A DNA stretch of 64,000 bases from positions 1 to 64,000 of the forward strand of contig JAAPAO010000034.1 of NCBI GenBank assembly GCA_013115145.1. The letters are read 5' to 3'. The DNA is from Perkinsus chesapeaki ATCC PRA-425 (Eukaryota; Protista; Perkinsozoa). The position numbers and the translations under genes are program-made. Shown one piece after another: positions 25,126-59,721 of the stretch (its first letter is position 1; each line of letters opens with the position of its first letter). Below the pieces are notes generated by a model. The model saw only the letters and a program-made list of their open reading frames with translations. It did not search any database and was not told the origin of the DNA.

Positions 25126-26972
25126 ATGGCTTCCTCTTCGGGAACTACTAGTGTACCTCCTTTGAGGTGTGATATAGCACAATCTCAAAATGTACTGGAA
25201 TGCATGGTTACCGATATCACCGAGGAATTCATAAGGGTAGCGTATCCATATGTTGAAGCGTGCATCATCCACTATAGGGACATTTAAAAAACGATGAGGA
25301 TCTCGATAGGGTAACAGAAGTCGCTATGAAGGTAAAGCAGTCTCCTGGCGGCCACTATAGAGACCTGTTTAGTTGGATTCCGATGTTCATGATGTTAGCA
25401 GCCTAGGCGAACATCTACCGTCTCTTACTGTCCTTAAGTAAGCGTATTTGTATCCGGCCCTCGGTGAAGGGAATGTGTTAGTCTATCTGGATCTTATATA
25501 CGGGAAGCTCGCAGTCTAGGGACAAGGTTGAGCATGCTCGTCGTCCTGAAGTAAGATACGCTTGCTCTCGCATGTTGGAGATGTCATGGGCCCTCAGTCT
25601 CTCGAGAAGCAGCCTTAGTGATCTCTCTGGGATGAGCTCGTTGCTGCCCAACTTACAGGAGCTGTGAGTTACACCTAAAGGTCCCGGGTTCTATCCCCAG
25701 TGACGTCATTTCAAGGTATATTGCATTTAATTGCCTCACTACTATGGACGGCATCGAATGGATGGACTCCCTGCAAATAGTGGACTTGGAAGGGAACTCC
25801 ATATCATCACTGAACGATCTCTCTGCCCTTGCCACGTGTAATCCTTTGCCACTCTCCTATTGCGGAGGTGTCCGTCAGGCAGTAGCATTTGGAACATATC
25901 ACTAGCTGGTAACGATGTTGTCCGTAAAGCTACACTTGGGGATATACTTAAACTAGTGCCGAGTCTGGAGGTCCTAGATGACGTCACGAGGGTTGACTGC
26001 CTATCACAGGAGGACCTTATCAGCTTTACTATGTACTTAAAGATACATTAGCATAGGCCATCGCTTGTTGGCTCAGCCATGAGCTTTATCGGGGCCGTCA
26101 GCTGAGTGGACGGAGCTCTGAGGCGTTCACCGGGAAGGGCTCGACAGCGGTGGGAAGGAAAGTTACTGCAGAGGAGATGTTGAAGGTGGGGCGCGTGACG
26201 GAAGCCGGGCTTAACTACGATGATAGATATGTCCTGACTTGGAGGACTTCACCAACCCATTAGAAATTGAAGTAGGTGGTGATTCGGTGGTTGTACGGCT
26301 ATGATCGTCCAGGGCTCCGAGGTTGGGGACGGTGGTAGCAGCTCTGAGCCGGATGAGGTATCATTGGTCCTTGAAGAGGCTAAGAGGAGGGTAGCTGGTC
26401 ACCGAAATATAATGGACACTGTAGCGCCGTAGTGGCAGCGTAAATCACAGGTCTGTCTTTCAGCTCAGTGGCTTCTATTCGGCGCGGCCTCCCTATACGG
26501 GCAGTACAGTGGCGAGCGGGGGAGATCGGCACACCAGACCGGGTAGAGGGGAATGAGGCCAGGGTCTGTCGTCGCGGAGCTACTCAATGTAAGGTACTCG
26601 GGAAGCTACCCTGAGTCGGGCTATGACTGCTAGAGGGTGTCCTGGGGTTCCTTATCCTGGAACACCGGCTTCGGTGCTTACTACTGGCGGAGAGATATTT
26701 AGTGGCAGTCCATTGAAGGCAATACGATATAGGAAAAGACAGGAAAAGATGGGGGAGGAAGAGGATAAGCAAGAGAGAAGAAGGCTTTCGGTGGATGAAG
26801 CTGGGCTAGATATTAGGCAGCTTATAGCAAAGTAAGGTATCTTAGGTTGAAGCTGGGAGGATATGTGAGAGGTTAATTCTTTTGTTGTAGGTACCGTATT
26901 GATTACGATCCTTCCTCTGAAAGTCCTTCACATTACCGACGGCGTCGGGGCTCTAGCGGGAGTTCGTCTTGA
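25126..26972 (+). CDS. LRRC56: Leucine-rich repeat protein LRRC56-like, multi-exon
   Basis: SLGEHLPSLTVL, LPNLQELYIAFNCLTTMDGIEWMDSLQIVDLEGNSISSL, SLAGN...LVPSLEVLDD; C-terminal LTTGGEIFSGSPLKAIRYRKR resembles the LRRC56 tail motif. Confidence 0.75.
25664..25715 (+). other. Intron composed of a tRNA 3' fragment (in LRRC56)
   Basis: gtgagttacacctaa-AGGTC-CCGGG-TTCTATC-CCCAG-TGACGTC-A-tttcaag; removal restores LQEL|YIAFN. Confidence 0.75.
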
Positions 26973-27111
26973 CCACGACTTGCCTCCGCATTATTGTACA
27001 TTAGAGATTTGTATCATGTCATCATTGTTGATAACGGCCTTTGTCGTTGAGGCAGCAGATGTAGTTGTGTCAACCTCCCGGGAATCTCCCCCCCCCGCAG
27101 TTTTTGTGCAC

Positions 27112-28879: not shown

Positions 28880-29157
28880 AGAAGACGACCACTTCCACCA
28901 GCTGGGAGCCATTCCCTATTCAACGATGCTCCTCCTATGCGCGAGTATACAACCCTTTTCATTCTCTCATATAGTAGTGTGTTACCGAGGACTGTGCTCG
29001 ATTCCCCCTGCTGCCTGCCTGTTAGGCAGTAACGGTGGTCGAATGCAAGCCTAGCCAAAAAAGCTGGCTCCACCTCTGAATACTTACAGTAGTTGTGTTA
29101 TCTCTTTTCAACTGCTGAAGGGATCCTGTAGTTATCAGTAATTCTCTCAACTAGAAA

Positions 29158-31138: not shown

Positions 31139-33363
31139 ATGTCTACAGATAACAACAACATCAACGGCAGTAGCAGCTTAACCCCCCAGCACCGTGGAAC
31201 TCGCCGTATATCATTTGAGGTGAGCTGCTGCTGCATCATCAGCGTTCTAATGTCTCATTCTCATTACTAATCCTCTTTCAGGAGATTATAGCTGACACAC
31301 GGTCAGCTCTCCGTCGTGTGGGATCAAACCTTCAAGCTGTCGACAATCAGAGGGTTCGTATTGCCTACCTCTGCGCGTCAGCCACGGGTATCTCTGGTGT
31401 CTGTCTTATCGCATCCATATACTCCTTTGCTCAAATCGAAACGCCAGTACCTCCAAATCCGAAAGACCTTGTCGATGCTAACCCTGACTTGGTATATATT
31501 CCTCCAGAGGTTGAATATGTCTCTGATGCCTGGAGTGTGTTTGCTGCCACTGTGTACGGTCTTGTAGCTGTTGCGGCAGCCTTCATGTTGCTTAGAAGAT
31601 TCCATATGTTATTCAAAACGTTGTTTAAAGATGCCTCAGTGTCGGCAATAATCAAGAGATCCTCCTCGTTCCTGAGTAAAATGTCGAAGGATAATTTACC
31701 GAATGTTCACGATGAGGCCAATGATAGTGTTGCTGCCCAGACCACGATCGAGAACAAGACTGCTCGGCGCACGAAACGATCGACTCTGGCGCAAGCTGCC
31801 AAGACACTCATCGAAACATCGGATAAGTTCGAGATCGCTGGTGAATGGTTTTGGTATCGTCATGTTGCATCTGAGACTTTGGAGGTTACAATGCAATTGC
31901 TGCAGTTGATCAGTTTTGGTGGTTCAGCATGGTCTGTCAGTGGTGAAGACGCGAGTGTCGTGAAGCCTCCTGCGACAATTATGGCTCAGGCCTGTTTGGT
32001 AGCTTTTAACATTACCTTTGCACCTGTTATATATTTTTATCAAAATCGCCTCATCGCTTTGGCCGGTGACGTTCTATCAGATATCGGTTTTGTACTTGTA
32101 CAGCTCAGCGCTATAAGCTCAGTACAGAACCCAAGATCGTGGCATGTTCTTCGAGCAACTACATTCATAACGCTTATATCAAGTGTGTTCCCATTCGCCC
32201 AATCTCTACATGATATTCACTCAATGTGGGATTATCTAATGCTTTCCTCTTTGGAACGTGCTAGGTGTAATCAGAAGAACAGGGCCTTTAGTAAGGTCCG
32301 CATCGCCATGGCATGGTTGCTGTGTCTATCCTTCAGCATCACGTTGGTCGCTTTCACCGGCTACCAGGAGTTTGGATGGGACTGCAATTCTGAGGTGGTT
32401 AACTTTGATCAAGATTGTCATATTAAGATTCACCCACTTCTGAGCTTCCCTGCCTGTGATTGTCGTATGGTCCACCTTACTCCAGATGAAGACTGTGCTA
32501 TTCCTATTGTTGAACGTATAAAATCTTATGAAAGAGTAGAGTACTTCTCCAGTGCTCCAAGCGAATGGCTACAAAGCTGCGGAATGGAGTTTGGTCAGGC
32601 TGAGCTCACTGCGCTTGAGCAGTACGGCAATAGCCTCATCTCTGTTATGTTACCTAATACGGATGGAGTCACCGAAATAGATCTGCGAGGGTTGTCAAGC
32701 TTGCAAGTGCTCTCTGTTACTTTCGACTCAGTGAGAACTATAACGGAAGGCTTCATAAGAGATTCGCCAAAACTGAGGTTCCTTACCTTTGAGATCAACG
32801 AGATCGAAATGCTACCAGCGAACATCGGAGATTTGGAACAGCTTGAAGAGCTTGTACTTAATGTGAATCCTATATGCTCCAATGCGACGGCCTTGGAGCA
32901 GTTTACATCGGTCCCCATTGTATGTGCGGCTTCGGGAAGTGGTACTGGTGGAAGCTGTACTTCGAGAGATGGTGGGGCTGTGGATAATGCAGAATCACTT
33001 GTTATTCGGGCATGTCAACAACTCGCCACTACAGGGTACACTAATGAATGTAAACCACAGTGTCCAGCTGTGGTTCTTTCAATGGGGATTGCTGATACTA
33101 ATAGAGATGGCCTTCTCAGCCATTCAGAGCTGTTAAGTGCCTCGCAGTTGTTTGGCTTCACAACCTCTATTACTGAAGAAGAACTGAGCTGTATTCTTAA
33201 TCTTTGCCCGGCTATCAGAGCCAATGGAAGCAGTGTGTCCCCTTCTACAGACATAAGCTTTCTAGCACTGGTAAGTTGGAAAAGTTACAGGTTAGGCATT
33301 CAGTGATTCTTGTTCTTTCAGACTGGGCTCGGAGGCATCACGACATGTCGAGATTGTCGATAA
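31139..33363 (+). CDS. Multi-pass membrane protein with Cys-rich/LRR region and C-terminal EF-hand-like loop
   Basis: Three exons (31139-31219, 31282-33270, 33322-33363); about 7 hydrophobic segments, CHIKIHP...CDC, LRRs (LSSLQVLSV, LRFLTF, IEMLPANIGDLEQLEELVLNVNPIC), DTNRDGLLSHSE. Confidence 0.8.
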
Positions 33364-37008: not shown

Positions 37009-37933
37009 ATGGTATCCTTTGTATGTGCATGTGGCGAGACCATTAGGAAGCCTAAGGTCCGTAACCATCTACAGCAACGGCATTGCGAGTAAAAGGGTGT
37101 TGCAGGGGTTGGTATCGCAGTAGGAGTGGTTGTTAGATATCTCTCGTGTGTTGACTGCAATGAGACATTCTATGGTGAGGACTATTCGACGCATAACAAG
37201 TGCATCTCCGAAGCTGAGAAGTACATGGGGAAGTTGTATAAACCGGGTACAGCTAGTACCGAAGGATCTAAGCAGGATCGATGGCAGGCTAGTGTGATGG
37301 AGGTAGTAAGAGATGGCAGAGGGACGTGGGGGAATGGGCGAGGTTTAGGTGCTGGAGAATTATCAGGGACCACTGAGAGGGTACGTCGACACTCTGGTGG
37401 GATATGATAACATACCTCGGAAGGAGAAGGCGTTCAATAACTTCATTAAGAACAGTCTTAAATTGTAGTGAAGGGGATTGTGAGAATTGTGAGGTCGAGG
37501 GTTGGCAGGCACAATCCATCGGAGATAAGGAAGCTGTGGGAGCTGGTACAGAGTGCGGCACCAGCTACGCCGGAGGGTGCATCGAAGAAGCGTTCAGCGG
37601 AGGAAGAGGCTTGGGGTGGCTGGGTGGAGGAGATTGATAGAGCTTTGAAGCGAAGAAGGACCGCTGAGAAAAGGTAATAGAAGGCAGGGGGATGAGGGGG
37701 CGGCAGTCGGTATTGATTCAGCATGCCGTGGAAGCAGCTCCGTGATGAGGTGGTGACACGGTACTTGAAGAAGGCTGGTAAGGCTGGAAGTAAGAGGGAG
37801 GATATGAATGACGTCATGTTATCTAAAGTAAGTCATGAGGAAAAGTCGGTATGAAAATGGCTGTTGTTAGATCCCAAAGGCCTACCTGAGCAAGTCTGCT
37901 AATAAGGTTTCTCTACCGTCTGATAAGCAGTAA
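37009..37933 (+). CDS. LYAR: LYAR-type C2HC zinc-finger nucleolar protein
   Basis: MVSFVCACGETIRKPKVRNH, LSCVDCNETFYGEDYSTHNKCISEAEKY. Confidence 0.9.
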
Positions 37934-38070: not shown

Positions 38071-39101
38071 ATGTCGGTGAATAATTACTACAAGACTTTG
38101 AACATCGCACGAGATGCCAGCAAACCGGCTATAAGGAAAGCGTATCTTACCTTGGCAAAAAGATACCATCCAGACGTCAATAAGGCACCAAATGGTGAGA
38201 TGGGGTTGCGGAGGGGAGGGAAGTCGGGAGTTGTTGAATTTAGCGGACAAGCTGTTCCAGGAGATTCAGGAGGCCTACAGTGTGCTGTCTGACGATGGTC
38301 AACGCCATAAGTAGGGTTGTTGGAGGAAGTGTCGGTATGAGATTCTGTGCGACAGATACGACGAGCGATTGCGAGCAACAGAAGGAGGCACCACTGGGCC
38401 GTCGGGGGGCTCCTCGAGTTCGAGTGGCGGTAGTCAATTCTATGGCGGAGCGCGGCCTAGGGACGATGGCAGACCGTGGGGGCCTGGCAAGCAATTTTGG
38501 AGTAGGGAGGCTTATGAGGCGTATCACCAGGGTAATAGGGGACTTTGGGACGGTGGTGGTGATACGGACACTGGTAGCTGCTAATCCAACATACGGTCAA
38601 GAATGGCAGAGACGGGAGGGAGCTGGCTTCCATGGTCCTAAGGAGAGCTATGCGAGGTAGTGGGGAGCGGGGGGTAGGGTTGTAGCTTGGATGAGCCGTC
38701 TCTGAACTTCCTCGGGAAGTCGAATCGGCTTAGTCGATTGCTTGACGGCTTCATTGCATAACAAGACGAATGCCACTGTTATTGTCATCGAGCTTGCAGC
38801 ATTGTTTGGGTGCTGTCCGAGGAGCTGGTTGCTGAAACTGTTATTGTTAGATTCCATGCCCGTATGAGGGCACATGACATTGAGATGGAGTATCGCAGGC
38901 AACGGATGGAGAGGGAAAGGATGGCTTGGGGTGAACAGATGAAGGATCAGTAATAACAATACCACCACCATGGTGGTGGCGGCGGAGCGAAGCACGAGAA
39001 TTAGGTACGCCTACGACATGCACCGGATGAACCCCTTTAAGAGCTGGTTGTTTATGGTATTCCCGGCGTTCCTAATAGTGTCACTATTTACTCCAAGGTA
39101 G
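38071..39101 (+). CDS. DnaJ (J-domain) protein with C-terminal TM segment
   Basis: NYYKTLNIARDASKPAIRKAYLTLAKRYHPDVN, FQEIQEAYSVLSD, G/F-rich region; ends WLFMVFPAFLIVSLFTPR*. Confidence 0.85.
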
Positions 39102-43300: not shown

Positions 43301-46300
43301 TGGCGACAGTTCCCTCAGAAGCACCAGTGTCGAACAGATGGTGGCTAGAGCACTATAGACTGACGGGTGATGTAGAGGAGCCCTTCTTGTATATAGCCAG
43401 TATGGGTGGCCAGGGGTTCAGAACCCAAGTGAGAGCAGCTGTGTTAGGTATAATGTAGAGATTCATATTGCCAGGTTCTGTCGGAGGTTTCCGTCACACC
43501 GTACAGCTCGGTGGAAGAGGCTTGGGAGAATCCAACAACGATAGTCTTTGAGACCTCCAGTGACGTGTCTACCATCCCGGCTCAGGGCGCAGCATCCAGT
43601 ATAATCTGGGCTCAGTGTGATGGTGTTCAAGCTGGTGATGATCAGGTCGTAGAGCAGAACTGCTGGTTCAAGGGCCACCTGGCTTCACGTTCATCTGTCC
43701 TCTTAAGAATGTTGAAATCGCTGTCGGGGACAGCATCACACAACACTTGCCGGAGGATAGGGAGTGCTCGGTGCTGCATTCAGTGGAGAGCGAGAGGAAC
43801 AAACTTCATGTGTAGGGTTTGCGATGGTAGCCCGAACGCCGCCAAGGGTCCTCGGTAGATACTTTGATAACCCAGATGCTGGCCTGAAGGCTGACACCCG
43901 ATACGCCTTTATTGTGGACATGGTTAATTCACTTTATGTGAACCCTACCAGCAACTACTTCAAGCTCTCGACAAGGATAGGTGGACAAGTTGTCGAAGAG
44001 AAGACCATTGAAGGCTTCCAGCTCACCAAACGCATGTCTGACACGCGCTACATCTCTCTGCCGACCAGAGAGGACCGCAGGGCCGGTGCCACGGACAACC
44101 TTGTCACATTCGTCATGGGGCTCACGGTTGACGCCCCTGCTGGAGGTCTGCTCGTTTTGATTGCTCCCAAAGGGTTTAGTCTGGTCCGTAATGGGTATAC
44201 GCGGAGTTGTGAGATAGAGGAAGCCTCCGGGATGGGCACACGTTACGCCGAGTTTCCAGCACTAGATGAGCTCACCTGCCGATGCCCAGTAAACGACTAC
44301 ACAGCGGAGTTGACAATACCACGAGTTCTGCCCAAAGGGGACTATGCCATCCAGGCTAGAGTATCGAACCCGTTGGTTACACCAGAGCACAACTTTTGGA
44401 ACATACTTATAAAGGACGAGGACAATCCTCGGGGCACCATTATGAGTGAGAGCTGGATTGACGGTATGGTCATCCAGGAGATTCTCAATCCTAGAATCGT
44501 CCCTTATAATGCTGCCAACGCTATTCCTGGGGAGGCGGCACCAAACCCGATAGACATCTTCTTTACTACTACGACACTCTTGCCGAACTCGAGGTCAGAT
44601 CCGAACGGCGGGCTTATCATGGTTACCGCTCCACAGGGATTCTACTTCCCGGCCGTTTGTCGATACTTCACGACGACGATACAAGTTGACGAGGCCAATG
44701 GTGGCGCCCTGCTGCCACCCGGAACCACATGTCAGGGGGACGGGGTCCGAACCGTTACTGTACGAACCCCTACGGGTACGTTCCTAGACCCAGGCACCTA
44801 CGGGTTCAGAGTCCTCATTGAGAACCCATCTGCACCTTTCGAAGACTTCAAGACGGAGGACAAGAAATGGGAATTGAAGACGTTGTTGTCGGATGGGACC
44901 ATGGTCGACTATAACGGTGCGGCTTACGGGTTTCCGGTTCGTCACCGCGCCCGGTATTTCTTCATCCAGGCCTTGAGCCAAGTCGGCCTCTACCGGACCG
45001 TTGTTAAGATATCTTTCTCCATCTACGAGACATTGCCACCCCAGGCTAATATCACCATAATAACGCCGGACACACTCACCGTGGACGCGGCCGCCGGCCT
45101 GCCGTGTGTCTATCCGACACCAGAGCAGATCGAGAACGCCATTCCTGGCACCGATCCGAACACTTTGGTGAACTCCCAGGACATCAGGGCAGATTTTGGG
45201 CAGTCACTGCTATCGGACGCGGCACAGCTGCCGGGGTACATCTCTTGCAAGGTCGTGTCTAGTAACGTAATAGTGTTAAAGAACGAAGAGGAAGCTCGGA
45301 CGGGAAGGCCACTGCTGGCTGGCCCGACCTATGAGCAGATTCTGACTAATGTCATGAACCCTCAATCTACACCGGAGCTCAATCTGTGGCGCATGGAGGC
45401 CCACACCGTTCGAGAGAATGCCCCTGAGACCTGGGCCACCACGGGATACATTATATTGCCAGAATTGGCAGATGTATCGGTCGTGAGTTCGAACCCTGCA
45501 TACGGCCTTTTCACTACATTCACCTTCTCTTTGACTCCAATCACTAGAGTAAGCGCCAACCCGTGGACCGCCTTACAACCGGCTTGCCGTAGATACCAGA
45601 ATCTGGTTCCATCCTTATCCACGCTCCGGTCGAAGGCTATTACTTCGGACCGAGACTGGTGGATCCCACAGTAGAGAGAGACTTACTTAGCACTATCCCA
45701 CCACCTGCAGGGGGGACAATGCCTCGACCTCCAGTGGACCAGGATATTGAGTGCTCGGTAAGAAGGCAACTCTGTGGTGGATTACTTAATGAGACTGTCG
45801 GAAGTCTGAGCTGTTCTCTGGTTGAATGCCCCTGAAGCCTTTCTTACAGGGTATCAATAAAAGGTGCACGTTTTTCAGGGCTAGGATAGAAATCGACCGG
45901 ACCTTCATATTAAGTCTCATGAAAATTCTGGTGAACGCCTGGTGCACCAAGCAGTCTTCATCAGTATTCCAACGCACTACTCTAACAGCGGGCTTAATTC
46001 ACCTCGGAGGGAGTAGCGGTATCGATTTTGTTTCTGAATCAGATATTAGCACCGATAGAGGCTGAGGGGGAGTGGACATGCCCCTTCTCCTTCACACCTT
46101 GCCTCAAGGTGGAGGCTATTCAGCTACAGCGATTACAAACACCCGATGTTGCTGTAGAGGACTCATCAGCGTAGACCAAAAAAGTGAGGAGAAGCTGTGA
46201 GTAACCACTCCAACAGATACCAACGAGCTTGCGATGAGCTACAACAGCTATGCGACAACGCAGACTTCCACGGTCCAACATTTCAGCTAGGAAACGACAG

Positions 46301-49300
46301 GATACTACACTGTGTGTCGAGTGGCGGGAGACTAGAGATCACACTTGGTATCACTACTCTTCTTGAAAAGGTACACAATCTTGGTCAGCAACATTGATAC
46401 CTTTCATTAGGACATCCCGCTATCGTTCTCTGTTACTGGCTATAACGCGGACTTGCCAACCTCTGGAGAGGCTCAGGCTGGTGAGACCTCTCTGTGATGT
46501 TACTTTCTCTTTGGAAACGGTTTCGCTGTATAGTCTGGACTCAAGACTCTTGAGTGTGTTTTTGAATACATGTGATCCACCAGTTTTCAAAGCTGTGTCT
46601 CTACTGTCCCTATGCAAAAGGATTATTCCTCCATGAGTGTCCTTCCCAGTATTTATTGAAACTTCTATATTTCACGGTCATTTAGCAGCTCTTGTCCGGA
46701 CTAGCTTTGATTAGTATTGCGTCCCTCAAAATTATACCCCTTTTTGTCAGCTCAAATAGACAACCTGTGGAACTTCGTGACTCGTGACTCTGACTCCTCC
46801 AAGACCATCCTTGACCGAAAGACCAGTGTTGGCTTTGACCAGCTTGGTGTTATTTATGTGGATTTAATATCACCTGACCAGACCAAGGTCAGCGTCAGCG
46901 ACAACATAGTAGAAGTTCATCTGAGGCTATCAACCCAAGTAGGGCAGGCATTCACTACACCATTGAGGACCCTCCACGGCCCAATAGGTTAATCCACCGG
47001 CACGACTGGCTATCACCTACCCCCCGGAGTTCGCCCGCGATAGTGCTACCGTTAGGGAGGTTACCACCAGTGGAGACTTCCCGAGAAAAGTTGATTGGAG
47101 GTCGTCAACTGTGTGCATCGTATCGTTGTTAAGGGGCTTCGTTGACAGGTTCAGTGGCAATCAGCTGCAAATAGACAGCAAAGACGAGCCTTTAAGAAGG
47201 GACGTTCAGCTTATCCTTCGAATGACGGTATCCAACCCACACATATCTCCGCCAGATGAATTCAACATCTGGCGGTTTGAGACCCTCTCATTGAACCCGC
47301 TGAATCTGTAAACCGAGGCCACTGAACGCATGACCACAGTATCGATTACGGAACGCAGATACAACAAATCAGATGTCAATTATGATGTTTCGGGTTTCAA
47401 GATTTACGGCAGCTTCCGTCGTGCCGAGATAGCCTCCCGGGTCAGCTCACCTGCAGTGGAAAATACCGTGGGGATCTGGTTTGTCCTGGAGTCGGACTTG
47501 CCCCGAGAAGATGTACGCACCGAGGATCGAACCGACGCTCTTAAGCCTGGCAAACCATCAGGAGAATCCAACCTCCTACTTGCGTATATGGTTCCCTCCA
47601 GGATTTGCTCCCGTAGATGCCAGCTGCGGCCTCCGAAGCTTCAACTTAGAATACCAAAGGTGTTGCTGCTGCTGCTGCTGCTCTCCGCTACTCCTCGTGA
47701 CCGGCCATAACTTTCGACAGATATGTTGGGACAGATTCCTTCTTCCCGCTGACCAAGAACTTTGTAGCCCTTCCGGCTGGCTCTCTGTGTGAGTCGGGAA
47801 TGGACACTAAGAAGAACCTTATGTACGTGGAGTTGCTGGTGGGCCCTTGATACGTCGCCAACGTGTAGCTGATATTCCCCTGAAGGTCGATAAGAATCTG
47901 GAGTATGGCTTGGACTATGGGTTCCAAGTCGGTGCCATTAACCCATCATATCTGCCCGATGATGGGAGTAACGTATTCCAGTTCGAAACTCAGATGTCGG
48001 GCGTCATCCTACATCTTATACAGGCAAGAAACGCTCTGTACTTTCGTTGGCCACTGTTCCAGCGTTCCTCAGGATGTGCCTGGGTTCGAGCTCAAGCTGC
48101 TGCACACGGCGAAGATCGATGCAGAGAAGACTAATCAGAGAGAGCCACTTAACCTCCTCACTTTTACTTTGAAAAGCATCAAGATCCTCCCTGGCAACAC
48201 CGTTGTTATGGTTGATGGTCCGCCAGTAGGCATAAGCGGTGTTCCTTTGGACATGTTCCTGGCAGGGCTTCGTTTTCACCTGCGCGTTCGTATCCTATGT
48301 AAACCTCGGGCCCACGACAACTTGTACTCCCGATGCGAACAAAGTGCAGTTCCAATTTGACGCCCTGGATCAGAAGGAGGCTAACGAAGAGTTCCAGATT
48401 AAAGTGTACGCCCGCGTTGTCGGCACCTACCCCTAGTGGCTGACAGATACGTTCGAAATCCTCAATTTACACCACAGCCCAACACTTGGGACTTCCGCCT
48501 TCTATCTCCACTCGGCCTGTTCATCGATATCCGTCTCGGCGTCCAAGGATTTGACATCACCGGATTGGTGGAGGTGCTCCTGCAGCCTTCCCCATTCCCG
48601 ACTAGCTTGTAGCTGTTTAGGTGACGATAGCTCCCGAGTTCACGTACAAGCGTCAGCGTAACAACATTGCGGTCGCCTTCCTGCCGTCCACTATCATGAA
48701 CCGTGCCGACATCGGAAACGAAATCGTCGTCACTGCGCCATCGGTACCCCATTTTATGACGGCAGAAGTTGCTATCTCCTGATTCAGGGATTCACTTTCC
48801 CTATCAACTGCTCACATTTCGATATGAAGCCCGAGGCGAGCGTCATCCCCGGGTATGAGATTCCAGAGGACTACGTGTTCCCTCCGGTCGGCACAACTGT
48901 AGGTTTCTCTCGGAGTCCAATTTTCTTTGAATTTTTCTCGTTAGTGCCGTGGTTCCGATAACGTGCTGACGATACGCTTCCCTGCTGGTGCTGGGCTGCA
49001 GCGTTATCGGTATCTTATGCGAGTCGACGTCATCAACGCCAAGTCCAATGCAAACCGATCCATCATCGATGCCGATCCTCCATTCTGGACCTTCAGGACA
49101 AGGGTACGCGAAAGCCGTGTAGATTGTCGCCCATTAGGAAATCTCTTAGGTCAACAACGAGCAAGTGTTTCGTATCGTCGATGCCAACATGACGGTCCCC
49201 GGCTTCTGGGTAACTGACTTGGTCATCCCTCAGATCGGAGCCGCTGCATCACCACCACCATCACAGCTCTCTCTATTAATGTCTTTGTCCGTCGCGATAT

Positions 49301-49314
49301 TAGCATTCATGTAG
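40312..49314 (+). CDS. Giant secreted, probably GPI-anchored protein with tandem beta-sandwich-like repeats (many exons)
   Basis: N-terminal hydrophobic signal (CWFFFLLWGVWG); recurring NPxxxPxxNxW...GF and IxIxAPxGF motifs; C-terminus GAAASPPPSQLSLLMSLSVAILAFM*; exons in 45760-46700 only partly resolved. Confidence 0.7.
42120..42164 (+). other. Intron composed of a tRNA 3' fragment (in giant repeat gene)
   Basis: gtagccgc-GCAAG-TTCGATC-CCTGG-TCCCTCC-A-gctatttgttag; phase-0 removal gives PPRGFK|IVDSV. Confidence 0.65.
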
Positions 49315-49789
49315 CATGTAGCCCCTTGGTTGTTTCCTTTCAAAGCTTCTCGTTATCCAGTTCGGAATGAGGCATTCCTTCGGGAAGGCAACGAGCTGGA
49401 GATTTAAAGCCTACTCTTCCGAGTGATGTGCCCCAGCATGGTCTGGCATTGCCATTTGATTGCGTTTCCATCGAAGCTCGTTTCGGTGCATTCTAGCTGG
49501 GGAGTCCCTCAGCCCCAAAAGGATTTAATAGTAAGCAATGGTTGTTACGGTAGGGTATCATGGCATTTGCAGTAGCGCACTCGTAACGCAAAGATGCAAA
49601 CACGAACGACAAATTATTAAGGTTCCATTATCGTGCCGACGCCGCGGAAGCGTAAGTGACACTATCATCTATCAAATCATCTCTAATTCGATAAGGTGGC
49701 CTCAGCATTCTTGGAGGTAACAGTTTACTCTCACCAGCGATGCGTTTAGTATACCTGACCAGCGCATAGACAAAAAATAGGGGCTCTTG

Positions 49790-52540
49790 TTACTTAGCCT
49801 TAGCCTCATTTTCTAACTCCCCCTCAATAACTTCGCTCGAGTGGGAATCGGAACCAGATCCGCTGCCAGAGCTACCACTACTCCCCTCTGTGGTTTGATC
49901 ATCTAAGACCCCACATGCGAGTAGTAGCGCGGAGCGATGGTACCCTCATCTGACGATGACTCTTCTTCATCGTCATCATCGCTGCCTGGAGCATTGGGGT
50001 CTACTGGCGACCTCCTCATTTTCTCTCCGGTAGCGAAATTGAAGTAATACATTATACCGGTAGAGTCGTAGAAGGGATGCCATTGAGATCCTATCGAAAA
50101 GGTAGCCCATATGATGATGCTATAAGACATCCGAGAGCCGGTATAGGTACCACCATGGCCGGCAGATGCATACTAGAACCTCGTTAGACCGGAGCTGTAT
50201 TTTACTATTTGGACATCGCTTACGCTTACGGCATGCTTCATTGGCAACAGTCGAATAACGAATCTTACCAATTATTGAGGAGGACCACGACTCCTCATCA
50301 TCTGACCTTGATGTGTTGATGGCAAGCTTCACACCAGACTTGCCATCATCTATTGTCGCCTTCTTCGTGCCGCGCATTCCCAACGTTCCAGCTTGGTACT
50401 GAGGAGGGAACTCACCATATGGCCACAGCGTCGGCACCGACTTGTCGCTCAGCAAGGGCTCCAGTTTCAGTTAGTTGGACGTCTTCGTGAGAGGTGTCGT
50501 TAAAAAGATTTGCCTTTAAAGCGACGTAGTCTATCAGGAACGGTTGCATTTCCTTTTCCGGCATGCTCAGCGTCTAAGGGCACCGTGTGGGTTCCCAGGA
50601 TCATGGCATCATCGACTAACCTGTATGTGCTTCATAGCATAGCAGTCATGACAGAAACACTTATCGGTGACTTGGCACCTGGTGAGGAGATGAGTTCCAT
50701 ACCCTCATCTCGGGCAGCTCACCTCAGCCTTGCTGGCATCAGTCCGCAAAGACTGCAGCAGACGAGCTTGAAAGGTGTGTGTCGGCTGCGATGCCCTTTC
50801 TGGTGTAGCTTGTCGTAGCAATCGTGGCATGTATGGTCCCGACACTCCAAACAGTATCTAAGTAGCTTTGCCCGCTCCTCAACCAGCCCATAGGAAGGCT
50901 TACGACAGTGCGGGTCTCTCGGCGCACTCGACACAGGTGATCTTTCCGTTTGCCAGCACAGGTACGTCTATATTGTGCGAGCCGGCATCCCCGAGCGCCT
51001 GGAAGTACACTGACCGACTTGGTGGACTTGGCCAGTTATGGTCACTTTTTTCCAGTTCTCTTTGAGGACCTCCCAACGCTCTGTTTCAGTAGTGAGAGTA
51101 TCGACGCATATGACAATTCTGAACGGGTGTTATTCTTCCTGCGATTGGGGGAAGGAGCGGTAGTACTGGTCTTTTGAGATGTCATTGTATTGCTGATATT
51201 CCTCAGCGAAGATCTTCAGGAATTTCTTTAGTGTCCTAACCTGTCGATAAAACTGTCGTCTCGAACCAGGCATGCCGGTTCGCCGCCTTACCAGATGTCC
51301 CTCTTGAGCCAGATCGACTCCAAATATCTTGCCCAGTTTTTGCAGCTGCAATGGACTAACGAGTGGCTCTAATGCGGCTCCCGGTTGGGAGTGGATGAAC
51401 TCGTAGCCCCATAATAGACGATGAACTCGAATTCTCAGAATCTAATGGCGCAGGTTCGATCCCCGACGCTGTCATTTTGTTCCCGACATCTTCCCTGTCT
51501 TCAGCTGTTCTAGAATATTCCAATAGCTGCCGGAAGTAGTCGTACATGGGATGCTGCCAAGTGGTGACCTAAATACCAATCCAACCAGTCATGCCACTAA
51601 CGCCTACTCTGGTCTCTGAGTTGGTGAAACACACTATACTGCCTATCCCTTTGTAGCTCGTCCATGGCATCGGTAGTTCAGCCTCGGAAAAGGCTTCGAC
51701 AACCCATCTAAAATGGAAAGCATTAACCTTGATCAATTGTTTTATATTATACATGTGGTCCATATCAGCCTCTGGGTCCATACAGAGATACTCCATCCAT
51801 TCTGACTCACCTATTTCAAGCAGTTATTTCGATAATAATGAATGCTGTTGCCGTGTCTTACTGGGAGTGTCTTCGGTGCACAACAGCACCACTTGTTTTT
51901 GTAAGCGTCTAAGGGCTCTTTGTGTGACTGAATCGTCAATGCCAAAGAGGATGAATGGATCTGCGTCTAAGTAGTCGAGCTCGGCCAAAGATACTGAACC
52001 CTTTTTTTCCAGGTATCTTTGATAGTAAGATATTTTTAAGCTCAACTTGCTAACCTTGCTCACCCCACAGCCCAGCTCCACGTATCATCCAGTGATGAAT
52101 TATAATCAGCAATAACATTATCAACTGTTTGCCAGCTAACTGCGTATCTGATTATATCGTGTAGTACACAGAGCTACACCGCAGCCGTACTCGGGCCCTG
52201 TTCTGCCTCGACCTTCTCTTATAGTTAGGTAGAGGTTGGCACCGGATTCAGTAGGCAATATGGAACGGAAGTTTACGGGTATCTCTCCCTCAGTGATATA
52301 CCCCTCAGAATTGCGATGCCGAAATCGGTATCTGCGGTATTCTTATGTGTACCCGTAGCGTGGCGAATGGGTTCTACAGTGACTGCTCGTCAAGAGACTT
52401 CTTGGATTCAAATAGATGCCCGAAGAGCTGAACTCGATGTCTCTTCTTAATCTGCAATGGACACTAAGATGTCTCTTATACCTATCAGTAGCTCTTGCGG
52501 CTTACCATCGTTCGAAGCTGTGAAGTTAATAATGCGGCGA
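49790..52540 (-). CDS. WW-domain/B-box zinc-finger protein, CEP164-N-terminus-like (5' end approximate)
   Basis: YLCMDPEAD...WVVEAFSEAELPMPW, HPMYDYFRQL, FGVDLAQEGHL, CVECAERP, YCLECRDHTCHDCYDKLHQKGHRSRH, WHPFYDSTGIMYYFNFATGE. Confidence 0.7.
51442..51487 (+). other. Intron of the minus-strand WW/B-box gene holding an antisense tRNA 3' fragment
   Basis: + strand ctaatgGC-GCAGG-TTCGATC-CCCGA-CGCTGTC-A-ttttgttcccgac; GT-AG on - strand, removal gives EDRED|ILRIRV in frame with the next ORF. Confidence 0.65.
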
Positions 52541-53133: not shown

Positions 53134-56100
53134 ATGCCGCTGCGTCTGGACATCAGAAAGAAAATGAATGCTCGATCTGATCGAGTGAAGTGCGTAGACT
53201 TCCATCCTAGTCCAGACCTACCCTGGGTACTAACAGCAGCACCTCACTATGGTCTTCATTGTTGCCGTATCACCAGGTGCTAAGTGCTATGTACTCCGGT
53301 AACCTTTATATCTGGGACTATAAGACCCAGGCCTTAGTGAAGCAAGTTGAGGTATCTGCACCCTTACCGGTAAGGGGGCCTATTGGGGGAGTGTTGTGAT
53401 GGCGGGTGATGAGTAGGTAAGATGCGCCAAGTTCATACCGCGGAAACAATGGATCATTGCGGGATCGGATGATATGAATCTGAGAGTTTACAATCAGAAC
53501 ACTTTGGAAAAGATAAAGGTGGGCATTTTGGTATTAAAGCAGATGAGGAGGCTGCTGACCTACTTAGACTATAGAGGCCCATGGGGACTACATTCGGTAT
53601 ATAGCAGTCCATTCGACTTTACCGTATGTACTGTCTTGTTCGGATGATATGACTATTAAGCTGTGGGATTGGGACAAAAACTGGGCCTGTACTGCCACGT
53701 TTGAGGTAGTAGGCTTCGGAGACGGCGCTGCTGGAATGAGGGATATGTAGGGTCATGCGCACTATGTTATGATGGTGCAATGGAATCCTAAGGATATTTA
53801 CATCTTCGCCTCAGCTAGTTTGGACCGCACTATCAAGGTAATTTGGGGGAAATATGGTATGAATTCCAAGTCGTATTTGGTAGGTATGGGGTGTTACTGG
53901 TGGCTCAACTACACCACATTTCTCACTTACTGGTCACACAAGAGGTGTTAATTGTGTAGAGTACAGCCCTTCTAAGGACAAACCGTAATGCTTGGGAGGG
54001 GCAGGTCACCGAGTAGCACTGCTGTACAGGTACTTGGTCTCTGGTGGAGATGATAAGACCGTTAGAGTGTGGGACTATCAGACTAGGCAATGCCTGCAGG
54101 TAGAAGCTTTGTAGGCCATATCGTTGGTATATCATCACAGGTCCTTACCGGCCACACCGCCAATATATCTTCAGTACTGTTCCACCCTTCTCTGCCTGTT
54201 ATCCTATCTGGCAGTGAGGATGGGACCTGTAGAATATGGCACTCTACTACGTAAGTGAGGAGTAGGGAAGCACATCTATTGTATAGTAGATACCGTTTGG
54301 AGACCACATTGAACTATCTATTGGAGAGGTTATGGAGCATCGCCTGCTTGCCGGGCACTAATGATGTTGCTTTGGGATTTGACGAAGGTAGGGAGGGCTC
54401 CGGTACTTGAGTCACCATATAGAGTTATACTATTATACTACTACAGTTGTGGTGTGATATAGATTAGTATTATTAGTAGTATACTAGGAGGCATTATGCC
54501 TAGTAATGATGGCATATCTTTTCTACTATATAATATTATCTCTACATCTTATACGGTTCAGCCAATCTTTTGAAGAGTGATTCATTAACCCTATACAGCG
54601 CTATTCCTATGCTGACTGGGTAAAGAAGGAGTTCTGCTTGTTGTAAAAATGTAAATGTGCTCACCTTAACATATAATGATATACTATTAGATGGTAAATA
54701 GTATATAATTGTCCTTGGGAGAAAATGTCTCCATTTGTGCAATTGTACCTTTAAAGATGGCCACCGAAGCGTGGAGTATCTTAGAGCTTCACTGTGGTGT
54801 AATCAGGTACTATGGTGATCCAGCTGGGATCCGAGGAACCAGTGGTGTCAATGCATTCGGGAGGAAAGATAGTCTGGGCGCGCGGGAATGATATCCAGAC
54901 TGCTAACCTGAGACAAGTGGATGATCATGTGTTGGGTAATAATGAGGGGATGTGGGCTAATCATACAGCGTCTGGAAATACTCGTCATTGGTATTAAAAT
55001 ATTATATAGTAGAACCTTATAGCGACTGTTGTGGTCACAGTAACAATAATGTATAGCATGAAACAACAGAGATAATACAAGAATGATATAACCTAATAGT
55101 AACAATAATGATAATAATAAAGCATTATATTATTATAAATAATACAAAGGCAATATATAGATATGCTAGGGCTAGGCTTGGAAGTGCACATCCATACGTT
55201 GGAGATGATCGGCTTGATGCTTTGCTGTGCTTTGATGAATAGTCTTCCTTGTTCTTTTCTAGATACCCTAGGTGACGGTGAAATGGTACCATTGTCTGTA
55301 AAGGATATGGGATCAACAGAAGTGTTCCCACAAACTATATCACATCATCCTAATGGTAGACTATTTGCGGTTTGTGGTGATGATGAATGGATTGTATTCA
55401 CTGCACAGGTAGCACCAGGGGTATATGGTATAATGTTCACTTAGATTTGAAAAAGTTGGTATGAGAATAGAACGACGTAGACTAAGTTGATCATCGGCCT
55501 TTGAATGTCTTTGTATAATGCTAGGGATACTTGGTACAATATTCGTGTGAATATGAAAAGTTTGGTATAAGATTAGAAACAGCCGCTGATACCGGATTGC
55601 TAGACCTGAAGGGTATGCTTAGGGCTTTCGTGGCTAGAAACAGCGAGAACGAAGGGTATATGGTAGGATTTTAGTACAAACATGGAAAGGTTGGTATGAA
55701 AATACGACCGCATACCCACGTTTTGCGTGAAGGCAGCTAAATACGGCTGAGAACTATACGTCCGTGAGGGTCTTAGAAAGTAAATAAAATGGGCTCTGCA
55801 TTACATCGTCAATACTTATATAAGCTCTGTCTTTGAGCGCCCCTATACCTTTTGCCGGCCACAAGGTTCCACCTGTAATATTTCAAAGTCCATTATATCA
55901 CTAAAACTTTAAACGTTGTTAATTGGTCATTATACTGGCGCTCATATCAGGCCCTTCGTAACAAGGCTTTTGGTAGCGGTTGTGAGTTTGTGTGGGCGGC
56001 TAGTGGTGCAGCATCGGGTACCTATTATGCCACTAGAGATGCCTCGGGTAGAATAACCATTTATAAGGACTTTGCTGAGGAGACATCCTTCAAGCCACCC

Positions 56101-59100
56101 TTCCCAGTTGATGAGATCTTCGGAGGTAGGTGTCGCGGGTTCGATCCCTGGGGACGGCATTTTTCAGGTTATTTACTCTGTGTTAAGACCTCCGACTTCG
56201 TCTGTTTCTATGACTGGAGTAGCAGCAGGCTCATCAGGCGTATCGATGTGGTGCCTACTTCTGTTATTTGGAGCGAATCTGGCGACTATGTCGTTTTGGC
56301 CACCGAAGATGACGGTGCCTTCGTAACGCCTTCCCTTGAAGCTTCACCGTTCATCTGTTTTGATAGGTCCTCCGCTACGACAGGGACTCTGTGGTAGCAG
56401 CAATAGCAGGCGGAGCTGATCTTGATGATGAAGGTCTCGAGATAGCGTTCGAGCCAACCTATGAGGTGGGTGGCGAGGTGGTATATGTGACAATAATAAT
56501 GATGCTTTTATTAGTTACCAAGTGAAAAGGTTATGTCGGGCACCTGGTGTGGCAATGATTCGTTTGTTTACATCTCATCCAATCAGAAGTTATGTTGCCT
56601 TGTCGCTGGTCAAACTGAAGTCATTGCTCACACTGATCGGTAAGGGGAAGCTAAGACTGAGTTCTTGGTGTGTTGTCTATGGTCGTCTTAATATTACTTC
56701 TTAGCATTTTTGCAGTATATAGATAGTCCATATCCATATACATGACCACGTCGATAGGTTGGTTAGGAGAAGAAAGCTCGGGATTTCCGGGCCGAAAAAC
56801 AAACCTTCACGAATTTCTTCGTATATGTACCAGATTTAAAGAGTGACCTCAACGTAGAGGGGAGGGGGGATTTCCGGCTGATAATTTGGAACCTGTTTAT
56901 AATGGTCTTTATCATTATTGAGAGCGCCTTTCGTTTGTTGGCTCACCTCAACAACAATATCGCAGTCGATACGCGGAAATAGTACTTTATTTTTATCACA
57001 CTGGCGAAGTATCGATGATGCTGTTTTCATTCAGGCCTTTGTATGTGTTGGGGTATATGCCGGAGCATGGTAAGGTTTACTGTATGGATAGAGACTATAA
57101 TGTTATCTCATTCGGGTAGGCTGTAGCTTCATACCGCTCCTTTCTCTATTCCCCGAACTTTAGATTAAGTCTCGCTTTGATTCAATACGAGAGTGCAATA
57201 GTAAGGCAGGACTTCTCCACGGCTGAACAGTGCTTTCCATGTAGCGTTATTTCTAAATCTTCCTAGTGCGGAATATCTTCCACGTTTCAGCGATCCCCAA
57301 GTCCCTATATAATAAGGTTGCTCGATTCCTAGAAAGCCAGGGCCACATCAGAGAGGCTCTTGAGATCACCACCGATAAGGACCACAAGTAGGCAAAGTTG
57401 TGATGGTCTAAGCGTAGAGTTGGCCGTGTGCTCTAGGTTGGACTTGGCGCTTAATCTTGGCGACCTTCAATTGGCTGGAGAGATAGTAGGGGAATTAACA
57501 GCACAGTTGCCGGCTGGAGCTGATAAAAGTGTTAACTATTCTAAGTGGAAGCAAGTTGGGGATCAAGCATTGAAGCAGGTAATGGGGCAGTGGGGGATGT
57601 GGAAGATACTCTTATATAAAGTAAAGTCGATGATAGCTATCGTAGATGTGGACAATAGGGTCCATCCATTTGGCACTTTGATAATGCATATAGATGCTGC
57701 TTTCTAATCTGCCATGTGGTATATAGCAAAGGTACTGACAACTATATAAAATTACAGTATATTACAGCATTTAGGGCATAACAGTATTAGGTAATAGTAA
57801 TGATATTAATAATAGGTTACCGTAGTAATAGTAATAATATTAATAATAGGGTACCGTAGTGATAGTAATAATATTAATAATAGGGTACCGTAGTAATAGT
57901 AATAATATTAATAATAGGTTACCGTAGTGATAGTAATAATAGGGTACCGTAGTCATAGTAATAATATTAATAATAGGGTACCGTAGTAATAGTAGTAATA
58001 TTAATAATAGGTTACCGTAGTAGTAGTAATAATAGGGTACCGTAGTCATAGTAATAATATTAATAATAGGTTACCGTAGTAGTAGTAATAATATTAGTTA
58101 TAGGTTACCGTAGTGATAGTAATAATATTAATAATAGGTTACCGTAGTAGTAGTAATAATAAATCCGTTGGTTTTAGGGTGACATCAATCTTGCTACTAC
58201 CTGCTACCTCCAAGGCGCAGATGTTACTGGTCTTATGTTAATAGCCCAGGCCACTGCCGACCGTGCACTACTGGGAAAGGTCGCTGCTATGGCAAAGGAA
58301 AAAGGTAACCAACAGCGGAGCGAAGCCCGAAGATGTGTCGTATTTTAGAGATGTGGAATGTGGCCTTCTCCGCTTACTTACTACTTGGTGATGCGGAGAG
58401 CTGCACTGATGTCCTTGTGGAGTCTCATCGGCTCCCAGAAGCAGTGTTCTTTGCTAGAACGTAGGAGCTGGGTCGACGCTGCGATGTGGGAGGATTGTGC
58501 ATGAAGAATTTTTGGGCTTTGATATGGGTATCTTAGGGTAGATAGATTATTATGGTTTTAATAATCAATAGTGATGCTGACACGGTTGAGATTGATAAGT
58601 ATCATACTTATGAAACACTAACTGTTCTAAATTTATATACAGTATATAATTTATTATTGGTGCTTGAATACAAACCAGTATGAATAATTATTATATAGTA
58701 ATTCACCATTTCTTTGTATTTTCTGAGGTGGACGAAGAGGACCTTTATTTATCTATCTCGTTGCTCACAGGTACTGCCCATCCAAGCTGGTGGATAAGGA
58801 CAGTAACCTATTCGAGGAATGGAGGGAAGATCTTACCAGTGTAAATGCACAGGTAGGCAGGAGGGAGGGATATAGTAGATGAGGATGGTATTGTACAGTT
58901 GGCATCGAGTTTGGCTGATCCTCGTAATGAGACTTATCAAGATAAGTTGTTTTCGGAGATGAGCACTACACTGAAGGCTGAGAGGAAGAGGTAGGTCGGA
59001 CAAAATAGTGTGTGGTGAGGAGGGGGAAGGGTTGTGTTATTTAATAGATGTATACTTACTATTTATATAATTATTAAGTATATTTATTAATAATATAGCA

Positions 59101-59721
59101 GCACCATGGCATATGAATATTAAAAAATATATGAATGGTCTCAGGGAGGGCTCCAAGGCTGCTGTGGCTGCAGTGCCGGCTGGTCGTTATAAAGAAGAGA
59201 GGAACTTATTGGATGTAGATGTTGTGACGGAGATGGCACAGAATGAGCAAGGATTCTATAGCAAGATGGGATGGTGAGTTAACCTATTTTGTATCTTGCA
59301 TGCTTAACCTTGAGATATCTTAGGTCCGGACCGTCAGCGCCATCTACTCTATTGCCCGTCAACGATAGCTCTCCTTCCGAGAGAGCTCCCTCAGCAACCC
59401 CAGAGCCCGTCGCTCCCGCTGCTCCTCATGAGGTACGCGTGGTTTCATAATCGAAAGGTCGCTGGTTCTATCCCTGCATCCCGCACTTTTGTCAGGCATC
59501 CTCGCAAAGTGTCCAGTCCGACAGTGCTGCATCCTCTTCTCCTGGCGTCGTGGATGTAAGTAGCAGTAAGCCCGGTACATCCTATCTGCTCCTCTCAGGA
59601 CGGCGTTCTAGTTGAATCGGAGCACCACGAATATCACTCGGTAAGGCCCCTCCCTCCTGTACACGTGACGATGTGCTTTCAGGACGGTACAGCATCCGCT
59701 GGACCGGGTGATCTACTTTAG
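53134..59721 (+). CDS. COPB2: Coatomer subunit beta' (SEC27), many exons
   Basis: [65 protein letters not shown]...FYDW; acidic tail ends GPGDLL*. Confidence 0.97.
54520..54640 (+). repeat. Dispersed intronic repeat, copy A (COPB2 intron 54388-54806)
   Basis: TTCATTAACCCTATACAGCGCTA (54581-54603) is the exact reverse complement of 62634-62656, with degenerate similarity on both sides. Confidence 0.75.
56126..56167 (+). other. Intron composed of a tRNA 3' fragment (in COPB2)
   Basis: gtaggtgtc-GCGGG-TTCGATC-CCTGG-GGACGGC-A-tttttcag; removal gives EIFG|GYLLCV. Confidence 0.78.
57806..58160. repeat. AT-rich minisatellite in a COPB2 intron (11 copies of a 34/25-nt unit)
   Basis: Unit TAATAATAGG(T/G)TACCGTAGT(A/G/C)(A/G)TAGTAATAATAT; short units lack 9 nt. 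Confidence 0.93.
59433..59495 (+). other. Intron composed of a degenerate tRNA-Met(CAT) 3' two-thirds (in COPB2)
   Basis: gtacgcgtggt-TTCATAA-TCGAA-AGGTC-GCTGG-TTCTATC-CCTGC-ATCCCGC-A-cttttgtcag; removal gives APHE|ASSQS. Confidence 0.8.

Follow-up and report, generated by a model that had tools for sequence, protein, structure and literature searches.

We analysed 64,000 nucleotides (nt) of Perkinsus chesapeaki genomic DNA (contig JAAPAO010000034.1, positions 1 to 64,000; the window). P. chesapeaki is a parasite of clams and oysters. Among the genes in the window are a gene encoding a leucine-rich repeat (LRR) protein, a very large gene, a gene on the minus strand, and COPB2. Six short introns in these genes contain a compact module laid out like the 3' part of a transfer RNA (tRNA) gene, with a B box, a discriminator-like A, and a run of T; we propose that these introns carry the relics of eroded tRNA genes. 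The window was compared with four syntenic loci. L005 is P. marinus scaffold GG674250, which carries the large gene and COPB2, and L001 is a P. marinus Logan contig, 100% identical to L005 and collinear with window 38867-59637. L003 is P. marinus scaffold GG686838; it spans window 24.5-40.2 kb and also carries an orthologue of the window's minus-strand gene (50.0-52.5 kb). L004 is from P. olseni and spans window 25.1-41.6 kb (it ends at window 41642), so the P. olseni comparison concerns intron 1 among the module-bearing introns. A 695-residue open reading frame (ORF) at 31219-33303 is the GenBank protein FOL47_006111 (100% identity), with orthologues in P. olseni (69% identity) and P. marinus (67% identity). 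Comparative exon chains across window 25-59.6 kb gave about 100 intron-like gaps with a total length of 12.2 kb, about 73 of them short; these counts are approximate, as some boundaries are wrong and the automatic pairing of splice sites was unsuccessful for about one third of the gaps. Introns of P. marinus are mostly shorter than 100 bp (PMC3101222).

Five GT-AG segments with tRNA-like content (introns 1 to 5) had been listed in a preliminary description of this DNA, and all five lie at the coordinates reported there. Removal of each segment leaves an open in-frame join, as had been claimed. Retention leads to a stop codon or a frameshift in four of the five segments; the 42-nt segment in COPB2 (intron 4) stays open if retained. 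Neither the annotated coatomer beta' of P. marinus (XP_002782665.1) nor COPB2 of Oryzias, Eimeria, or Cryptosporidium contains these 14 codons, and we therefore regard this segment as an intron as well. The join at this site, EIFGG|YLL, had been described as conserved in the family, and it is indeed contiguous in P. marinus, Oryzias, Eimeria, and Cryptosporidium, where the sequence reads EIFGG(F/Y/Q)LL without interruption. The sixth intron was absent from the earlier list. Evidence for it comes from the reading frame, which changes between two flanking exons that are conserved in P. marinus (LPRED|ENPTSYLRIWFPPGF), and its 5' splice site, GTACGC, comes from the acceptor-like strand of an antisense module. 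In COPB2, the exon-level match to the annotated P. marinus protein stops at about the 5' splice site of intron 5. One P. chesapeaki RNA run yielded three contigs that are 100% identical to the window and splice out five other COPB2 introns (53706-53750, 53838-53883, 54251-54289, 54388-54806, and 54936-55262; all GT-AG, 39-419 nt). The contigs end before 56126 and cover none of the six module junctions; the five introns that they confirm lack both a tRNA-like module and a clear pyrimidine tract. Judged from sequence, the six modules are probably removed as introns, with GT-AG ends, reading frames, protein homology, and P. marinus gene models in agreement.

The feature that singles out these introns is the B box, the internal promoter element bound by transcription factor IIIC (TFIIIC) on tRNA genes. 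The 10-mer GTTCGATCCC occurs in the window at 42132, 51454, and 56139 only, exactly as described before. Allowing at most one mismatch, GGTTCRATCCC has seven matches in the window where 1.66 are expected, and GTTCNATCC occurs 11 times against an expectation of 1.95. Six of the seven GGTTCRATCCC matches are inside short introns, namely the five already listed and the sixth. By chance, 0.32 B boxes would be expected in 12.2 kb of intron-like sequence (Poisson P ~1e-6), and the module is present in 6 of the ~73 short introns. Non-intronic matches are at chance level in the window and in three related loci. The B box has at most one mismatch to GGTTCGATCCC in the six window introns and in five P. 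marinus introns.

Most of the weaker candidates were set aside. The seventh B-box match, at 31320 on the minus strand, is inside a conserved coding exon and fits chance, as does a weaker profile match at 45479-45506 (GTGAG TTCGAAC...), which codes for SSNPAYGLF and is conserved in P. marinus. A B-box-like match at 42020 is exonic and was judged to be due to chance. Another at 41471, within a 232-nt intron and with two mismatches and a profile E value of 11, is kept as a weak candidate.

The surroundings of the B box are organised as in a tRNA gene. The B box (GGTTCGANNCC) forms the T loop, and the exact tRNA spacing of 7-nt strand, A, and T-run that had been reported is present in all five listed introns. 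We aligned 13 copies from three species, anchored on the T loop, which reads TTC(G/T/A)ATC and is placed between GG and CC. In most of the 13 copies the T loop is preceded, at a distance of exactly 5 nt, by a variable-loop word, RRGRKC (AGGTC, AGATC, AGAGC); the specific AGGTC of the earlier account is found in two of the five window copies and is lacking in the other three. The position 7 nt past the T-stem is A in 11 copies and G in two, and a T-run follows this discriminator position in 11 of 13. Stretches of TTT to TTTTT are found 0-5 nt from position 73 in five of six window copies and in four of five alignable P. marinus copies. The modules stop at the tRNA 3' end and the T-run, and the intron ends 7-25 nt further on. 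In the four sense copies, the T-run is located 7-12 nt and the T-loop A 22-27 nt upstream of the 3' splice site.

Some copies retain more of the tRNA gene. In intron 1, each of the three species has an anticodon-loop-like 7-mer at the distance expected of a tRNA (GTTACAC, CTGACAC, and TTACCAT; Val-like, UAC/GAC), and intron 5 has a Met-like loop (CAU) in the window (TTCATAA) and in P. marinus (TTCATGA). Anticodon-arm-like stems with 5/5 pairs are seen in intron 1 of P. marinus (L003 2868-2887, TTCGG/TCGAA) and P. olseni (L004 782-801, TCGGG/CCGGG). Their sequences are different, and this single case may reflect compensatory change or a one-base slip of the alignment. The most complete copy is the 101-nt P. 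marinus orthologue of a COPB2 intron that has no B box in the window (window 58853-58898; Table 1). This full-length relic features an A box, TAGTGTAGTGG, which agrees at 10 of 11 positions with TRGCNNAGTGG and starts 43 nt upstream of the B box (44 in a canonical tRNA); tRNA position 1 lies 4 nt downstream of the 5' splice site, and the trailer is followed by the 3' splice site. An A box at canonical spacing is found only in this P. marinus intron and in none of the six window copies, which begin at or after the anticodon arm. The orthologous window intron keeps a D-arm-like 5' part and is without 56 nt that include the T arm. The preliminary description had proposed that 3' pieces of tRNA genes were captured; the full-length relic, with both A and B boxes, instead points to whole genes that probably eroded.

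Pairing in the T-stems is at chance level. The 5-nt T-stems of the earlier account do not hold up as paired stems, since pairing is seen at 3-4 of 5 positions only; for the three outer pairs, 22 of 39 cells show complementary bases, as many as with mismatched partners (permutation p = 0.58), and the P. marinus copy of intron 3 is the only one with a T-stem paired at 5/5 positions. A structural pattern consisting of a T loop, at least 4/5 stem pairs, and a T-run is not enriched in the window (4 observed, 1.7 expected). Thus, the signal resides in sequence motif and spacing, not in pairing. We accept a tRNA-gene origin because of the tRNA-gene architecture, despite negative results from tRNA detectors (see below): judging from motifs and spacing, the modules very probably derive from tRNA genes. 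They are not classed as tRNA genes or pseudogenes in any detectable sense. tRNA gene copies are unusually numerous in P. marinus (>500 for five types; PMC3706591), which suggests a source supply for the relics.

Table 1. Introns with tRNA-like modules in the window, two related introns without a module, and their orthologues (L001 and L003, P. marinus; L004, P. olseni).
Intron	Window position	Strand	Length (nt)	Host gene and orientation of relic	tRNA-like parts	Orthologous intron
Intron 1	25664-25715	+	52	LRR-protein gene; sense	anticodon-loop-like GTTACAC 25668-25674, AGGTC, B box 25687-25697 (GGTTCTATCCC), 7-nt strand, A, TTT	L003 2850-2906 and L004 ~765-820; both with Val-like loop and T arm
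Intron 2	42120-42164	+	45	very large gene without Pfam match; sense	B box 42131-42141 (AGTTCGATCCC)	L001 2936-3004; 15 nt in common (GTTCGATCCCTGGTC), remainder scrambled
Sixth intron	47513-47561	+	49	same large gene as intron 2; antisense	B box 47523-47533, minus strand (GGTTCGATCCT)	L001 7880-7955; B box decayed, only CACCGA...GCGCTC still aligns
Intron 3	51442-51487	-	46	minus-strand gene; antisense to host	B box 51453-51463, plus strand (GGTTCGATCCC)	L003 20522-20568; B box 11/11, T-stem perfect (GCAGG/CCTGC), T-run conserved
Intron 4	56126-56167	+	42	COPB2 (coatomer beta'); sense	B box 56138-56148, then GGACGGC, A, TTTTT, CAG	L001 12694-12744; AGGTC and B box 11/11
Intron 5	59433-59495	+	63	COPB2, C-terminal region; sense, starting at anticodon loop	TTCATAA 59444-59450, AGGTC, B box 59464-59474 (GGTTCTATCCC), ATCCCGC, A, CTTTT	L001 14922-14982; 78% identity across entire tRNA-like part
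COPB2 intron without B box	58853-58898	+	46	COPB2		L001 14381-14481 (101 nt); full-length tRNA-like relic
Short intron without module	37089-37131 (approximate)	+	42			L004; begins with module (13045-13080)

Each of the six module introns has an orthologue in P. marinus, at an unchanged position (Table 1); five of these keep the B box and the sixth has decayed. The orthologue of intron 1 is present in P. olseni, too. These shared positions show that the modules are not recent captures of tRNA pieces. On the comparative sequence evidence, the relics were in place before P. chesapeaki and P. marinus split, and the relic in intron 1 also predates P. olseni. We found no clear case of intron presence in one species and absence in the other among ~55 positions compared between P. 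chesapeaki and P. marinus, with pairing unsuccessful for about one third of the gaps; one apparent case turned out to be an alignment artefact. On P. marinus scaffold GG674250 (L001/L005), which is collinear with the window in other respects, the minus-strand gene that hosts intron 3 (window 49300-52500) is lacking. The P. marinus orthologue of this gene is on GG686838 (L003 19.2-21.5 kb), where it adjoins the orthologue of window 40 kb, owing either to a rearrangement or to an assembly difference.

Conservation within the modules is highest in the B box. Over the five pairs that can be aligned between P. chesapeaki and P. marinus, the ungapped identities are as follows: B box, 50/55 (91%); first five trailer bases (the T-run), 17/25; variable loop, 16/25; outer T-stem, 18/30; acceptor strand, 15/35; and far trailer, 11/40. 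The B box differs from the acceptor strand and far trailer with a Fisher p of 3e-11, and from the variable loop and outer stem with p = 6e-4. For comparison, ordinary orthologous introns are near saturation, with an identity of 0.545 in global alignments versus 0.467 for non-orthologous pairs, and an 11-mer shared at 10 of 11 positions is found in 1.3% of non-orthologous pairs versus 4/6 module introns. Little is kept beyond the B box in introns 2 and 4. The antisense relic in intron 3 keeps its B box (11/11) and T-run in P. marinus; taken together with the chance-level T-stem pairing over all copies, this points to a constraint on DNA rather than on a pre-mRNA hairpin. The conserved B box is probably still used for something. 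The same comparison bears on an earlier argument that the pieces come from different tRNA genes. That at least two isotypes are involved is supported by the Val-like and Met-like loops, but differing acceptor strands, which had also been cited, do not show different sources, given that orthologous copies differ from each other to the same extent.

The explanation that we favour, and consider reasonably likely on the sequences at hand, is that the modules descend from tRNA genes that have eroded, the B box persisting as a site that works at the level of DNA and may be one for TFIIIC. Entire tRNA genes, including the RNA polymerase III (Pol III) terminator, would have occupied introns before the genus diversified, and would then have eroded under the pressure that holds Perkinsus introns at 40-50 nt. 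During this decay, the stems have become unpaired, the 5' part has in most copies disappeared or given way to the 5' splice site, and some copies have lost their T arm. The B box, in contrast, has been held far above the neutral background, and the T-run less so, in both orientations relative to the host gene. By analogy with extra-TFIIIC sites, the retained B box may still be bound, TFIIIC being the simplest candidate. In sense copies, the T-run may double as a pyrimidine tract. The preliminary description had assigned it this role, and the T-run does lie at a suitable place, 7-12 nt before the 3' splice site; the role itself is only possible. A bolder version would make tRNA genes the intron-making elements of the Perkinsus lineage and the source of a good part of its many private introns: whole or 5'-truncated genes would have entered coding exons, been spliced at ends of their own with the T-run as pyrimidine tract, and worn down to a minimum of 40-50 nt, the B box being kept through a TFIIIC role inside genes; we regard this version as doubtful.

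A number of observations weigh against the survival of tRNA-derived B boxes as functional sites. A scan with the tRNA model of Rfam (RF00005), which had been proposed as a check, returned no tRNA in the window or the related loci, and neither ARAGORN nor Rfam, in gathering and E-value modes, found a tRNA or any other convincing RNA family in the window, L003, L004, or L005. A search restricted to 621 bases around the two best P. marinus relics, with E values up to 10, also gave no tRNA. Conservation is not strict: three of 11 B-box positions in intron 1 differ between the species, and the B box of the sixth intron has decayed in P. marinus. Nor is conservation confined to the B box, as most of the relic is kept in introns 3 and 5 (~78% identity). 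Two modules, one from P. marinus and one from P. olseni, are unmatched in the window. The P. marinus case is the full-length relic described above; the P. olseni module, at the start of its intron, reads AGGTC, GCTGG TTCTATT CCGCG, 7 nt, A, TTTTT, and was found by the profile outside the training set (E = 0.0035), whereas the orthologous window intron is without a module. The sample consists of six loci from essentially two species (P. chesapeaki and P. marinus), and the window copies were selected for a good B box. Occupancy by TFIIIC and consequences for the host genes are predictions. Lastly, the existence of a second conserved intronic motif that is independent of orientation, GCGGAGCGAAGC, means that the B box may belong to a wider set of DNA or RNA signals carried by introns and need not be tied to TFIIIC.

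This second motif has five matches in the window, where 0.23 are expected: 24996-25007, 38982-38993, 41958-41969 (minus strand), 58315-58326, and 59915-59926. In the related loci it is found at L001 94-105 and 14100-14111, L003 16777-16788, and L004 15745-15756. At least three copies are located 10-45 nt within short introns, one of them antisense. Two copies are conserved at orthologous P. marinus introns, and one of these also in P. olseni. The motif contains GCGAAGC, which forms a very stable DNA mini-hairpin; the copy at 59915 is directly followed by a T-run and the copy at 24996 is preceded by ATTTCGCGGCGC. Another conserved intronic block, of ~20 nt (ACCTATTTTGTATCTTG, with an 11/11 match), is common to the COPB2 intron at 59274-59323, which has no tRNA-like module, and its P. 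marinus counterpart (L001 14752-14818).

How the tRNA genes came to lie in introns admits more than one answer. One possibility, which we take seriously while thinking it unlikely, is that tRNA genes or 5'-truncated copies of them were inserted into coding exons and were spliced from the start, today's relics being the youngest or best-kept survivors. The introns consist almost entirely of the relic, including the full-length P. marinus case, and the fixed 3' end at the terminator with a variable 5' extent is as for 5'-truncated copies. Furthermore, the majority of intron positions in Perkinsus COPB2 have no equivalent in a vertebrate, indicating that the lineage has gained many introns, and the position of intron 4 is absent in Oryzias (the nearest intron is five codons away) and in Eimeria. 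However, no gain event was caught among the ~55 compared positions, and deletion of non-tRNA intron sequence would produce the same picture. Target-site duplications, to which the preliminary description had looked for evidence of insertion, do not exceed those of control introns, and this counts against intron creation. Introns without a module are equally lineage-specific: 1 of 11 mappable Perkinsus COPB2 introns, module-bearing or not, matches a position in Oryzias, for which exon ends are listed only in part over residues 226-298. Thus, the COPB2 outgroup comparison is without power to separate gain from colonisation.

A little less likely still, to our mind, is that tRNA genes settled in existing introns, which are safe sites in a compact genome, that they mostly died there, and that the constraint seen today stems not from TFIIIC but from the splicing needs of very short introns, the T-run acting as pyrimidine tract and the T-loop region as a splicing signal in the RNA. 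In the four sense copies, the distances of the T-run and the T-loop A from the 3' splice site would suit such a scenario, as would the 6:2 ratio of sense to antisense copies over independent loci. This ratio is, however, no different from 1:1 (binomial p ~0.29). Antisense copies have the same boundaries, and one of them has a B box conserved at 11/11 positions and a conserved A-run, which is unable to act as a pyrimidine tract. The RNA-confirmed neighbouring introns are spliced with neither a module nor a clear pyrimidine tract, and the T-stem hairpin is not maintained.

We think it very unlikely that the modules are not derived from tRNA genes at all, the B-box-like word and the T-run being a convergent intronic motif. 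The failure of the Rfam tRNA model and ARAGORN even on 621 bases, the unpaired T-stems, the lack of enrichment of the T-arm and T-run pattern (4 vs 1.7), and the presence of other recurrent intronic motifs would all be expected of such a motif. Convergence does not readily explain why several copies have AGGTC exactly 5 nt before the T loop, why anticodon-loop 7-mers at the right distance are kept between species, why an A or G followed by a T-run is found exactly 8 nt past the T-stem in 11 of 13 copies, or why the full-length relic has an A box 43 nt upstream. Least probable of all is the spread of a single family of tRNA-derived short interspersed nuclear elements (SINEs) or transposon-type introners, which would account for a recurrent module with a shared core in unrelated genes and both orientations, and whose common ancestry for some copies could be masked by deep decay. 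Against such a family, the copies are alike only at tRNA-universal positions, stop at the terminator of the tRNA gene itself, and carry neither a body foreign to tRNA nor a tail of the long interspersed nuclear element (LINE) type. Two different anticodon loops are present among them, and neither the boundary repeats (3-4 nt for the longest) nor the terminal inverted repeats (2-3 nt) exceed those of 12 control introns. The distinction from SINEs and introners made in the preliminary description is therefore upheld, and a profile search for a whole-element family brought up no further members.

Erosion of tRNA genes with a surviving B box, if correct, touches on several questions. How intron-rich lineages acquire introns is a long-standing question, to which transposon-like introners provide the only well-documented bulk source so far. 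Dead tRNA genes forming 6 of ~73 short introns would amount to a second bulk source of introns or to a new fate of tRNA genes. A B box that is 91% identical in both orientations within genes transcribed by RNA polymerase II (Pol II) suggests a large set of intragenic TFIIIC-type sites, as a prediction; if true, the Pol III machinery would be linked to gene-body function in an alveolate. What this analysis adds is the cross-species evidence, the counter-examples to strict conservation, and the full-length intermediate. P. marinus can be cultured and transfected.

The remainder of the locus has a few features of its own. Six COPB2 introns of P. chesapeaki (54388-54806, 54936-55262, 55415-55947, 56641-57030, 57585-58177, and 58462-58768) are 300-600 nt long and AT-rich, whereas the P. 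marinus introns at these positions measure 28-131 nt, a lineage-specific expansion in one gene. About 3.6 kb downstream of P. marinus COPB2 there is an integrase-type gene (L005 16719-18633; Pfam rve and Integrase_H2C2). The window also contains duplicated blocks. At 200-4200, the ORF fragments 211-522 and 3359-3610 start with the same peptide; at 8050-11300, the fragments 8052-8375 and 10841-11164 are near-identical, and a neighbouring fragment, 11002-11295, may, as a guess, be glycoside-hydrolase-like. Two tandem, intron-less paralogues of an amino-acid transporter are encoded at 13335-14900 and 16017-17462 (Pfam Aa_trans, E ~1e-48 each).

In a literature survey that covered few subscription journals, spliceosomal introns derived from tRNA were described neither for Perkinsus nor for any other organism, and no account of intronic B boxes in Perkinsus came to light. 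Several known systems are nevertheless comparable in part. tRNA-derived SINEs are likewise related to tRNA, have Pol III promoter boxes, and are dispersed in genes, but they possess a tRNA-unrelated body, a LINE-type tail, and target-site duplications, whereas the Perkinsus modules have a natural tRNA 3' end and terminator and are mostly without the 5' half. Introners and introner-like elements, reported from Micromonas, Aureococcus, fungi, and Amoebophrya (PMC7789003, PMC3609843), resemble the modules in being recurrent units that make up spliceosomal introns of unrelated genes. Those of Amoebophrya, a relative of Perkinsus, are strain-specific and feature repeats, both direct and inverted (PMC7789003). 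Introners are near-identical, multi-copy, and strain-specific, and such repeats are frequent in them; the Perkinsus modules, in contrast, have no consensus beyond tRNA-universal positions and no end repeats, are old, and are shared between species. The Dada DNA transposons of P. marinus, 4.7-11 kb in length, insert into tRNA genes (PMC3706591) and thus involve the same genus and the same abundant pool of tRNA genes. Unlike the modules, they sit inside tRNA genes; no link to introns is drawn in the portions of PMC3706591 consulted, and no Dada sequence flanks the Perkinsus modules.

The closest functional parallel that we can suggest is with TFIIIC sites outside tRNA genes. Extra-TFIIIC (ETC) sites are known from budding yeast, chromosome-organising clamp sites from fission yeast, and transcription-independent TFIIIC sites from C. 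elegans and human (papers on such sites include PMC4228148 and PMC6950938). Like these, the Perkinsus modules have a B box without a functional tRNA, are conserved between species, and above the neutral background, and are predicted to act at the DNA level independently of orientation. ETC-type sites number from a few to some hundreds, lie for the most part between genes or close to promoters, and are not known to form introns, whereas the Perkinsus modules, as candidate sites, fill very short spliceosomal introns in which the rest of the tRNA gene is still visible. The Perkinsus relics also share with nested tRNA genes the arrangement of a Pol III gene inside a Pol II intron, in either orientation. 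tRNA genes nested in the introns of protein-coding genes are known in animals and other eukaryotes. There, however, the tRNA gene is a small passenger in a long intron, while in Perkinsus an intron of 42-63 nt essentially is the dead relic, with its promoter box conserved.

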